A stretch of 63,927 nt of DNA, filler included, from Reticulomyxa filosa (lineage: Eukaryota > Protista > Foraminifera), in assembly GCA_000512085.1 (NCBI GenBank). It is 12 parts of 12 records of this genome, joined end to end, with 100 filler letters (N's around TTAATTAATTAA, not from the genome) between each part and the next. Parts side by side here need not be neighbours in the genome. Positions count along the whole stretch, not along the records: positions 1 to 2,905 come from ASPP01004192.1; 11 more parts are not named here. One strand, written 5' to 3'. Under the pieces are notes generated by a model. It did no database searches. It was not told where the DNA came from and worked only from the letters and a program-made list of their open reading frames with translations. Below, one piece after another: positions 1 to 2,826 of this stretch. Position numbers and translations under genes: made by a program. The number at the start of each line of letters is the position of its first letter. The first letter of the stretch is position 1.

Positions 1-2826
1 ATAAGCAAGCGTTGAGCATATTCTTCAAATTGTTGCTGGAACTGTTGATTATTGAGATTACGAGCGCTGGGTCTCCATGATAGAATATCAAGCAAAATTT
101 TTTGTGCTGCATAAAATTCTTGGCAAGACTTATGTAAAAATTGATATTTATTGTCACCAATCCTTCGTAGTACAAATTTAGTAATACTGTCACCACTGAA
201 ATATTTTTCCCAAATATCTTTTGCTTTTGTAGCTGGAATGACCGTTGTTTTGTTTGTTTTCATTTCTGTTTTCTCATCAATATGCTTATTGTCCTTTTCC
301 ACTTTTGGGTCCAATATGTTCCAAATTTGTTCATCTTCATGTTGAAATTCAGTTTCTGTTGCAACTTGATTTCCATGCAAAAACATATCAAATCCTAAAT
401 CTTGACAAAAGGTTTGAAATGTTGATTTAATTTTTTTTAGATCAGTTTGGATTCGCAATTCGGTTAATTTCATTGAAATCGTTTGTACGTGAATATCAAC
501 CCATTGTTCATTAAACGCTTCATATACTTGTGCTTTTGATATTTTGGTTCCCACAGAATGTTGTTTCATCAACAATGGTAATACCGTCAATATTAATCGA
601 AGTAAAAACGGCTCTTCCACCATTTTTTGTAAATTTGGATAGTTTTTTAGTGTTTCTTCGTATTTTTGAATTGACCAATCCGCATTTTCATTCATTTTGT
701 TTTTTTTATTTGTTTTTATAAATTTTTCAATATAGCCATGCATTTGTTCAGCCGAAAAGGGCCACAAATAAACCATTGGTGTTGCTGCGATCGAACCATG
801 ACTTGGGCCAATGAAAACCTGTTTGATATCTTCCTCACTTAATACATGACTTCGGCACGTGATAATAATTTTGGCATTCCATTGGCCCAAATTGAAGCGA
901 TCATAAAAATACTTTTTATTTTAGTTTTATTATAACGGTCAAATATTTCATCAAAGCCATCGATAATGAAAACAAATGAAATATTTTCTCGAATGATATC
1001 GATGGTTTCTTTATTTATTTGCTTCGTTTGTAAGGCTTGTGATATGATATCATGTTCAATCGATTCATGATAGCATTTGGGCAATGATATGTACACAGGA
1101 AGCGCTTTTGTCAAATTGTTGTCATAATTTTTCCATAAGGTGTTCTCTAAATGGCGACAAAACAAGCTTTTTCCAGATCCTGATTTTCCTTGTAACACCA
1201 TCACATCCTTTCGCTCACTGGCTTTTTTTTCTTCCAAAAACTCGAGTATATGTTGATGACAATCATATCCACTATTTTTCTCATTGTTGCCATTGTCAAC
1301 AAAAGGATAATTATTGGCTTGCAATGGAATATATGTTTCAAGTGCCTGTGACATGGCCGCATCTTCGTCTAATTCTTGTTTTCTTACGTCCTTCAGTCTC
1401 AATGCGACATCGACACAACTGGCTGGATTGGTTTCACCAACGATATATTTTTTATAATATTCAAACAAAGTTGCATAGATAGCTTTTCCTTTGATTTTTT
1501 TGGGATCAGGAGCAAGCAGTTGTTCGTAAACAAATGCTGCCAATTTCAAAGGAATGCTGCCATTGATTTGTTCCTCAGTTTTCCCCTTCAATTGTGGAGG
1601 TTTCAATATTCCCACCTCCGCATGTGGCTTGCAACGATTGGCAATTTTTTTGATTTCTTTTTCATCGATCCATTCGCAAATGATGTCATTGATTTTGGTT
1701 AAAGTCTTTTCACTCGCCTGTTTCAATTCTTCCTCTTTCAATGAAGAATTGGGTTTCCATGCACGAATCAGTTCATAGAATAAGTGATTTAGCTTTGGAT
1801 TTTCAATGACCGTATAGCCCTCCAAAGTTGTATAATTTTTTAAAGTTGCCTGCATTTCCACATACACATCGTGCTTGGGGACATACAATTTGATATTATG
1901 GCATCGATAATGTGTCTTGGATTTCTGATCAAAGTAGTCTTTGTCTTCCGACACAATCAAATTGAATCGCTCTGCTTTTTTGATCACAGCCACGGCAGTT
2001 TGCAATTCTATGGGACTGTCACACAAAATTGTAAATCTGCCAATGTCAAACACTTGATTAAAGTCGCCATCATAATCCGTTTGCAATTTCTCTAACAGCC
2101 TTGCGTCGCCCTTAAGACTGGGTGGCTTTACCACAATGATTTCATATTTTTGTAATTCGATGATCAAGTTCTTGATTTCAGTACTGTTCATTGCATTTTC
2201 ACTTCGCTCTCGCAAGTCTTCAAGACTCTTTGCATGTTGTCGAATTTTCTGCGCTTTCAATTGATAGAGCAGCTCTGGCTTGATTGCATACAGACATTGG
2301 TAGTTCTTATCTTCCACTGCCACAGCATCGTTGCTCGAACAAATTGAATGCTCCGAATTGTAAAACATTACTTTTATTATTGTCGTCACAGTCAACTTGC
2401 CACAATTCGGACAACAAAACGAGTCCTTGCCAGACGCAAGCGATGTACTGTCAAAGCCTTTGTTTATCCACACTAGCAACCCTTTCGATGCCAGGCAGCT
2501 TTCATTGGTACAATACCCTTGCAAGTTTATTCCTGGCTTTATTTCGCCTATTTCTGTCTTGTCTTGTTCTCTTTGTAAACTCTTCGCTTTGAGCAAACTC
2601 CCTTCCGTCACTGAATTTCGTTTAGTGTCATTATCACCTACAGATTGCATCTAATGAAATTTTTCATGTACATGTACACAATATGTAGATTCCCACATAG
2701 AGAGAGAGAGGCAAGGGGGGGGGGAGGGGGAAAAGGGATTTCTTTTTAATTAAAAAAAAAGATTCCTTTGCTCCAGTTATTTGAATATACACCTTTTCTA
2801 GCTCGTTCACTTTCTCTTCTATATTC
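1..2826 (-). CDS. NLR-like STAND protein: Cys-rich Zn module + RelA/SpoT-like nucleotidyltransferase + NACHT NTPase (5' and 3' partial; one apparent frameshift at ~915-925)
   Basis: ORF 839..2650 has GINLQGYCTNESC..CPNCG, then LKGDARLLEK / DIGRFTI / HYRCHN / VEMQ / HLFYELIR, then Walker A GKSGSGKS and Walker B FIIDGFDE. After a 1-nt shift the frame stays open to base 1 (KIIITCRS, LWPFS, EEPFLL, YQFLHKSCQEFYAAQ = NACHT sensor-1/winged helix). An AG acceptor precedes 2650 and a small upstream exon lies at ~2793-2826. Confidence 0.88.

Follow-up and report, generated by a model that had tools for sequence, protein, structure and literature searches.

A large NACHT-WD40 family of the foraminifer Reticulomyxa filosa with a RelA/SpoT-fold domain and a probable Tas1-like chemistry

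Contig ASPP01004192.1 (C4192) occupies positions 1–2905 of the window, a 63,927-nt stretch of DNA from the foraminifer Reticulomyxa filosa along which all positions are counted here. The entire contig (2,905 bp, from an assembly of 101.9 Mb in 50,809 contigs) was studied, and it holds on its minus strand, to which all features below belong, the 5′ two-thirds of a gene of the STAND/NLR type (signal transduction ATPases that have numerous domains; NOD-like receptors). The gene belongs to a family in which a domain with the fold of the RelA/SpoT homologue (RSH) synthetases precedes a NACHT domain and WD40 repeats. In our judgement the family probably, though by no means certainly, consists of NLRs with an RSH-fold pyrophosphokinase effector resembling the bacterial toxin Tas1, for which an ATP-consuming (p)ppApp chemistry is the likeliest. 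A first-pass annotation of the DNA had proposed a rhizarian NACHT protein with a RelA/SpoT-type effector. The host is indeed a rhizarian, and the peptide strings quoted in that annotation were all found on the minus strand.

The RSH domain spans positions 1700–2200, equivalent to aa 151–317 of a 603-codon open reading frame (ORF), and was recognized by Pfam, AlphaFold (AF2) modelling, Foldseek, VIA-align, sequence profiles and a residue census. Pfam RelA_SpoT (PF04607) matches aa 183–268 of the ORF product (positions 1847–2104) with an E of 3.1e-6 and 27.9 bits, where the cut-off is 27, and a scan of the genome with PF04607 gave this domain 30.2 bits. The Pfam matches of the ORF, to RelA_SpoT and to NACHT, go far past what chance would give. 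The AF2 model of the domain has a pLDDT of 77 and a pTM of 0.64. The best 50 Foldseek matches of this model are all RSH synthetases, with Tas1 in first place (E 5.9e-7, probability 1.00). VIA-align gives Z of 9.5–12.1 with 105–146 residues aligned for Rel, RelA, SpoT, the small alarmone synthetases SAS1/2, CapRel and Tas1, and Z of 8.3–9.9 for Pol-beta-family polymerases and RsfS. On the predicted model the RSH fold is regarded as secure, and the RelA/SpoT assignment, together with the nucleotidyltransferase fold by which it was to be checked, is borne out. Scans of the domain against PHROGs and PADLOC returned nothing significant, the best being phrog_20411 with 17.1 bits and PDC-S33 with 16.7 bits.

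The motifs of the domain are ARLLEK (2087–2104), FDIGR (2036–2050), HYR (1904–1912), VEMQ (1850–1861) and HLFYELIR (1763–1786). Their order, on which the first-pass annotation had relied, corresponds to that of the catalytic RSH motifs when the profile is aligned to Tas1, RelP/YwaC and RelQ/YjbM. In the family, D..R, YR and ExQ stand opposite DxxGxR, GYRS and ExQ of the synthetases. More specifically, profile alignments pair D202, the predicted Mg-binding Asp (2045–2047), with the Asp of DIAG (DIAGxR), the YR with GYRS, and E265, the predicted catalytic Glu (1856–1858), with the VEIQ Glu of YjbM and YwaC. In an alignment of 21 diverse relatives (A3, whose positions plus 150 give the ORF numbering), K38, D52 and E115 are invariant, and K30, R34, E37, Y43, G45, R55, K87, Q117, H139, Y142 and R146 are at least 90% conserved. 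The basic ATP-phosphate residues K180, R184 and K188 are conserved as well. Where the (p)ppGpp synthetases have the signatures DxxGxR and GYRSxH/IRT, the family has D(I)GR and THYR/ATL. The Asp and Glu were earlier said to look intact; they are present here and are both retained in 50/50 near-complete paralogue domains, and among 92 R. filosa domain instances in deposited proteins the Asp was found in 70/73 and the Glu in 68/68.

By sequence profile, the RSH domain is closer to Tas1 than to the (p)ppGpp synthetases. A profile of 19 paralogue domains, all from R. filosa (A1), was used in an exhaustive search of 1.84 billion representative proteins and brought up 63 proteins at E ≤ 1e-3, with about 47 strong matches among them. 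Of ten strong matches that were looked up, eight belong to R. filosa and the other two are metagenomic kin. The distant relatives, about 22 at E 5e-9 to 8e-4, include proteins of Guillardia theta and Triparma laevis, a phage MuF (SPP1 gp7) protein, an Ank-domain-NACHT protein, a 3,127-aa calpain-containing protein and DUF285 proteins. Three of them match Pfam RelA_SpoT with 40.6, 26.9 and 19.7 bits, only the first being over the 27-bit cut-off, and two of these three are fused to tetratricopeptide repeats (TPR). When two distant relatives were searched singly, Tas1 was the best PDB match for each. Against the PDB sequences, the A1 profile found Tas1 (6OX6) as the best match (E 0.022) and as the sole RSH protein. 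The A3 profile found Tas1 over the full domain with an E of 1.4e-15, followed by RelP/YwaC (3.3e-8), RelQ/YjbM (2e-6) and M. tuberculosis Rel (3.6e-4).

A native alarmone hydrolase of the HD_4 type (PF13328) was searched for in the R. filosa assembly, and the only strong matches were on contaminant contigs. These matches, on C7084, C8583 and C32270 (492–885 bp, 61–65% GC), are ascribed to bacterial contamination and not to native genes. HD_4 reaches up to 174 bits on the high-GC contigs, and the two strongest RelA_SpoT matches of the genome (79 and 70 bits) likewise lie on C8583 and C32270. Contamination was also considered as the source of contig C4192 itself and was ruled out, as its GC of 31–41% resembles that of other R. 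filosa loci (30–36%).

The family is large. A count of paralogues had been called for, and searches of the genome with the RelA/SpoT-like domain gave 348 candidates with at least 150 scored matches (46–86% identity to the copy on C4192). The N-terminal domain with four cysteines (4-Cys domain) gave 252 candidates with at least 150 scored matches (47–70%), and the C-terminal half of NACHT with the following arm gave 405 candidates with 148 scored matches (50–74%). Among the database homologues listed, 50/50 are Reticulomyxa filosa proteins, which bear the names 'hypothetical', 'NACHT domain-containing', 'WD-40 repeat' and 'NB-ARC domain-containing'. The RelA_SpoT domain is omitted from the public names because most copies score under the Pfam cut-off. 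In many copies a single frame is open over 1,650–1,880 aa, and the intact paralogue ORFs that were retrieved measure 1,679–1,860 aa. The sensor beyond the contig had been expected to consist of WD40 or pentapeptide repeats, and 16 WD40 repeats were found at the C-terminus in each of the 3/3 intact paralogues scanned with Pfam. The order of domains in the family is a short leader, the 4-Cys domain, the RSH domain, a linker of about 165 aa, NACHT, an arm and two WD40 propellers. The RSH domain had been placed directly upstream of NACHT, a statement that needs correction in view of this linker.

The RSH domain is also the most constrained part of the protein. Mean column identity computed across 32 full-length paralogues is 0.77–0.83 for the RSH domain, the best-conserved segment, 0.59–0.68 for NACHT, 0.57–0.67 for the 4-Cys domain and 0.46–0.56 for the WD40 region, the least conserved. 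The median Nei-Gojobori dN/dS (ratio of nonsynonymous to synonymous divergence) of the RSH domain among 19 copies is 0.21, with dS mostly saturated and dN to the nearest copies only about 0.09–0.13. The RSH domain is under purifying selection. A constrained effector, a diversified repeat sensor and a high copy number together make up the usual pattern of NLR repertoires (PMC4986451).

The copy on ASPP01004192.1 is itself interrupted. Its 603-codon ORF runs from an ATG at 2648–2650 to a stop at 839–841 (positions 839–2650). The start codon and a low-complexity, poorly conserved leader (aa 1–37) take up 2540–2650 in the ORF list, and in N-terminal alignments similarity to the paralogues begins at about aa 31–38. 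The linker between effector and NACHT (1208–1699) is colinear with the paralogues and has no family match in Pfam or NCBIfam scans. The N-terminal half of NACHT (926–1207) stays in the frame of the start codon and contains Walker A GKSGSGKS (1166–1189) and Walker B IIDGFDE (947–967). Pfam NACHT (PF05729) matches aa 482–575 (E 1.2e-9, 38.7 bits, cut-off 26.7), and this match ends past Walker B; in the intact paralogues, 162–163 of the 167 model positions are matched. A net loss of 1 nt at about 920–926, just past Walker B, splits the domain. The shift, placed within 900–930 by tblastn and by DNA alignment with paralogues, falls in an A-rich, length-variable stretch coding for Asn and Lys. With an intact paralogue as query, tblastn aligns frame -1 as far as base 920 and takes up frame -3 at base 926, and in a DNA alignment with five paralogues the gap in this copy is 10 nt, whereas the other gaps are 0, 3 or 6 nt. 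Past the shift, the annotated ORF adds 24 codons until its stop. The C-terminal half of NACHT and the arm are translated from the shifted frame (3–920), which holds sensor-1 TCRS (849–860), FLHKSCQEFYAA and FLHKSCQE (117–140). Of the NACHT motifs named in the first-pass annotation, GKSGSGKS and IIDGFDE stand in the ORF frame as supposed, while TCRS and FLHKSCQEFYAA belong to the other frame, and the shift had been overlooked. An uninterrupted NACHT domain with the sensor-1 Arg was found in the intact paralogues and not in this copy.

An intron was ruled out as the cause of the frame break because this copy is shorter, not longer, than the paralogues at the shift. An old pseudogene was ruled out as well, since the shifted frame is stop-free over 306 codons to the end of the contig and is 55–70% identical to paralogues over all 306 aa. 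The frameshift arose through misassembly of a homopolymer-rich stretch, or else it marks a very recent inactivation. The locus could therefore be a dead copy, in which a real frameshift leaves a 603-aa fragment with no working NACHT or sensor. This possibility has to be taken seriously, though we lean against it, and it concerns the single copy and not the family. The net -1 nt relative to all five paralogues splits NACHT, in-frame stops occur in other members of the family, and the public gene model stops at the premature stop (the 603-aa product is already deposited as a public protein). Nevertheless, the 306 open codons and their identity to the paralogues mean that any inactivation would be very recent, the A-rich low-complexity stretch is of a type prone to assembly errors, and the contig is short within an assembly of so many contigs. 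The best DNA identity of this copy to another locus of the assembly is 77%, with no near-identical second copy. The C-terminal repeats are missing from the sequence because the gene leaves the contig at base 1. An Rfam scan of the contig gave no match.

STAND and NLR proteins generally work through ligand binding, nucleotide exchange, oligomerisation and activation of an effector. In the same way, the WD40 sensor of the R. filosa proteins would bind a non-self or altered-self ligand and release NACHT, which would exchange its nucleotide and then oligomerise. Oligomerisation would switch on the N-terminal RSH domain by proximity or by loss of autoinhibition. The RSH domain would then move pyrophosphate from ATP to the 3′-OH of a nucleotide, with (p)ppApp as the likeliest product, because the domain is closest by sequence to the Tas1/Apk toxins, and with rapid depletion of ATP/ADP. 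A fast local metabolic shutdown or death response could be the outcome. In this manner we infer that the domain is an active enzyme, what it makes, what triggers it and which biological role it has, be it immunity or allorecognition. R. filosa is a multinucleate organism that forms an anastomosing network, and allorecognition is therefore as plausible as defence against pathogens, in analogy to the fungal NACHT-WD40 het genes. The boldest form of the proposal is a hundreds-strong immune or allorecognition NLR repertoire with an adenosine 3′-pyrophosphokinase of the Tas1/Apk type as its executioner, turning local ATP/ADP into (p)ppApp; this form can only be put forward tentatively.

Several observations weigh against the proposal of a Tas1-like NLR effector. 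The PF04607 score is barely over the cut-off, only about 13 paralogues pass while most score 22–26 bits, and two intact paralogues gave no match to PF04607 at E ≤ 0.01. The copy in hand is frameshifted within NACHT. THYR/THHR stands where relatives have GYRD/GYRS, and the acceptor site is therefore altered. The VIA-align Z of Tas1 is 9.6, compared with 12.1 for Rel and 11.8 for SAS2, so that the affinity to Tas1 rests on sequence and not on structural rank. Since the structural alignment does not single out Tas1, acceptor specificity is unreadable from the model. The assembly is fragmentary, and the absence of a hydrolase is therefore weak evidence. A homodimer prediction for the RSH domain scored 0.00, which is evidence neither way.

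Alternatively, the effector could be a classical (p)ppGpp synthetase of the SAS type, whose guanosine alarmones would serve as diffusible second messengers or act against bacterial prey or endobionts, instead of depleting ATP. The Pfam family that was matched is RelA_SpoT, VIA-align places Rel and SAS1/SAS2 slightly above Tas1, the profile also matches YwaC and YjbM at E 1e-6 to 1e-8, and ppGpp synthesis was the activity proposed by Dyrka et al. for the fungal NLR domain (PMC4986451). However, in the sequence profiles Tas1 is ahead by about 7 orders of magnitude, and with R. filosa copies alone no RSH protein other than Tas1 is found. The replacement of DxxGxR and GYRSxH/IRT by D(I)GR and THYR/ATL also speaks against it, as does the failure to detect a native (p)ppGpp hydrolase in the assembly. 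Classical (p)ppGpp synthesis is accordingly judged unlikely.

A third activity to be weighed is that of the toxSAS (toxic SAS) enzymes resembling CapRel and FaRel2, which place pyrophosphate on the 3′-CCA of tRNA; translation would then be stopped when the NLR fires. CapRel matches in structure (Foldseek E 1.4e-4, VIA Z 10.5–10.9) and is itself a defence effector coupled to a sensor, and PDC-S33, to which PADLOC gave a weak match (16.7 bits), is a candidate defence protein. Nevertheless, CapRel was missed by both sequence profiles at E ≤ 10, Tas1 and the SAS enzymes score far better, and no basic tRNA-binding extension is evident, which makes a tRNA target very unlikely. Equally slender are the prospects that the RSH domain is an inert adaptor or oligomerisation module, or that the family does housekeeping signalling unrelated to immunity, as the borderline Pfam scores and the altered GYRS-equivalent motif might suggest, since the metal- and phosphate-binding residues are near-invariant in more than 50 copies as well as among the distant relatives, no other part of the protein is as constrained as the RSH domain, and a conserved effector with a diversified repeat sensor in hundreds of copies is the usual pattern of an NLR repertoire.

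The 4-Cys domain (2267–2539; aa 38–128), delimited by paralogue alignment and an AF2 model, was missed by the first-pass annotation, as was the affinity to Tas1, though its list of domains was right for RelA/SpoT and NACHT. The cysteines are arranged as CxxxxC (2495–2512) and CPxC (2402–2413), and all four are invariant across 18 paralogues. The AF2 model (pLDDT 85) is beta-rich. Foldseek against the PDB gave no match to it at E ≤ 1, and in a wide VIA-align search the best Z was 3.7, with weak rows resembling beta-gamma-crystallins. The domain is probably zinc-binding and might be a built-in regulator of the protein. A language-model feature search brought up clusters of hypothetical rotifer proteins at 0.90–0.93 as candidate relatives. 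Small proteins consisting of the 4-Cys domain only were considered and rejected, as 5/5 of the fetched cases are truncations at contig ends.

A number of variants were seen within the family. In contig C6763 (protein P0001), the 4-Cys and RSH module occurs twice in tandem in one ORF before a single NACHT, the 4-Cys domains lying at 889–1155 and 2029–2301 and the RSH domains at 1225–1722 and 2371–2865 of this double-effector paralogue. ETO26992.1 (contig C7525), named 'vcbs repeat-containing', has its RSH domain at aa 727–890 behind about 700 residues with no Pfam match, and may have another architecture at its N-terminus or result from gene-model fusion. A paralogue ORF at L014:1900–7479 (minus strand) has about 130 aa additional before the conserved start of the family, and deposited models also add N-terminal sequence; P0002, for instance, has 1,905 aa compared with an ORF of 1,762 aa. 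The WD40 arrays are 126-nt tandem repeats at the DNA level with 67–76% identity (e.g. L015:4493–6298 and L017:2574–3820), alike enough for reshuffling, yet less uniform than the conserved WD repeats of some fungal NLRs. In contigs C33842, C35571, C35091, C3509 and C26715, the sequence breaks off about 200 bp past the 4-Cys domain. Such breaks within the family are systematic in the assembly; copy counts based on ORFs are therefore unreliable, and many 'partial' proteins are artefacts. Strong relatives of the RSH domain were also found in P0056 (JGI metagenome, E 2e-73) and P0061 (ENA metagenome, E 1e-52). Both come from environmental assemblies, and close kin therefore exist outside the reference genome.

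NLRs whose enzymatic effectors use up or transform nucleotides (TIR NADases and PNP_UDP phosphorylases, for example) connect the immunity of bacteria, plants, animals and fungi. If the proposal of a Tas1-like effector is true, alarmone-type nucleotides would join cell-autonomous defence in eukaryotes. In the boldest form of the proposal, (p)ppApp synthesis would be put to use by a eukaryote for the first time, as a counterpart of the chemistry of bacterial abortive infection and of type VI secretion system (T6SS) toxins. There would also be a stronger case that the immune effectors of eukaryotes were recruited from the conflict systems of bacteria. The family extends the architecture to a third eukaryotic supergroup and offers hundreds of natural sequence variants around a highly constrained catalytic core. 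It also suggests a specific chemistry that can be tested, namely Tas1-like (p)ppApp synthesis with ATP depletion.

The order RelA_SpoT-NACHT-WD40 is already known in fungi, though rare, and the R. filosa proteins themselves are already in public databases. NLRs of this order were described in fungi in 2014 by Dyrka et al., e.g. in Gaeumannomyces graminis (PMC4986451), in agreement with the first-pass statement that such effectors occur on fungal NLRs. In the Sordariales they form a rare 'canonical' N-terminal class with about 17 examples (PMC12258605). The R. filosa family is like them in domain order and in the proposed direct enzymatic role of the effector. Fungal genomes, however, contain a handful of these NLRs, whereas in the rhizarian R. 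filosa they number at least 150 copies and are the dominant class. The R. filosa proteins further differ in having the 4-Cys domain ahead of the effector and an effector so divergent that most copies miss the Pfam cut-off. The R. filosa domain is Tas1-like by sequence, in profile comparisons of R. filosa copies and their distant relatives with PDB sequences. A literature search, of incomplete coverage, returned no paper on NACHT or NLR families in Reticulomyxa and none that ties NLR RelA_SpoT domains to (p)ppApp, and no functional study of RelA_SpoT effectors on NLRs was found by it.

The second comparison is with Tas1 and the Apk toxins. Tas1 and the MuF-fused Apk2 make pApp, ppApp and pppApp and drain ATP, and Tas1 homologues fused to PAAR or MuF are proven (p)ppApp synthetase toxins (PMC10083569). 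The pattern K..ER...K...Y.GD, D..R.TI, ExQ and GH..Y...R is common to these toxins and the R. filosa domain, and a MuF-fused protein is among the distant relatives of the family. On the other hand, Tas1 and Apk, as toxins of bacteria, are secreted or carried by phages, have PAAR or MuF domains for delivery and come with cognate immunity proteins (Tis1, Aph1), whereas the R. filosa domain is joined in one protein with a eukaryotic STAND switch and shares only about 15–21% identity with them. Having neither a PAAR or MuF domain nor a known immunity gene, the R. filosa protein is not an Apk1 or Apk2 by architecture; as far as its sequence tells, it is Apk-like in the catalytic domain only.

RelQ/SAS1, RelP/SAS2 and the long Rel, RelA and SpoT enzymes share the fold (VIA Z 10.5–12.1), and their Asp, Glu and basic ATP-binding residues align with those of the R. 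filosa domain. In contrast to them, the R. filosa domain lacks the G-x-R of DxxGxR as well as GYRSxH and IRT, and the protein has no hydrolase, TGS, ACT or ribosome-binding domain. CapRel and the toxSAS offer a parallel in control, as an RSH-fold toxin is kept inactive within one polypeptide and freed by a sensor of the invader, and they match the R. filosa domain in structure, though sequence similarity of CapRel to it is undetectable by hidden Markov models (HMM). In CapRel, sensing and autoinhibition are performed by a C-terminal pseudo-zinc-finger and tRNA is modified; in the R. filosa proteins, control would be exerted by NACHT-WD40. The R. filosa family is set apart from the known fungal NLRs by the Tas1-like effector, the additional 4-Cys domain, the huge expansion and the rhizarian host.

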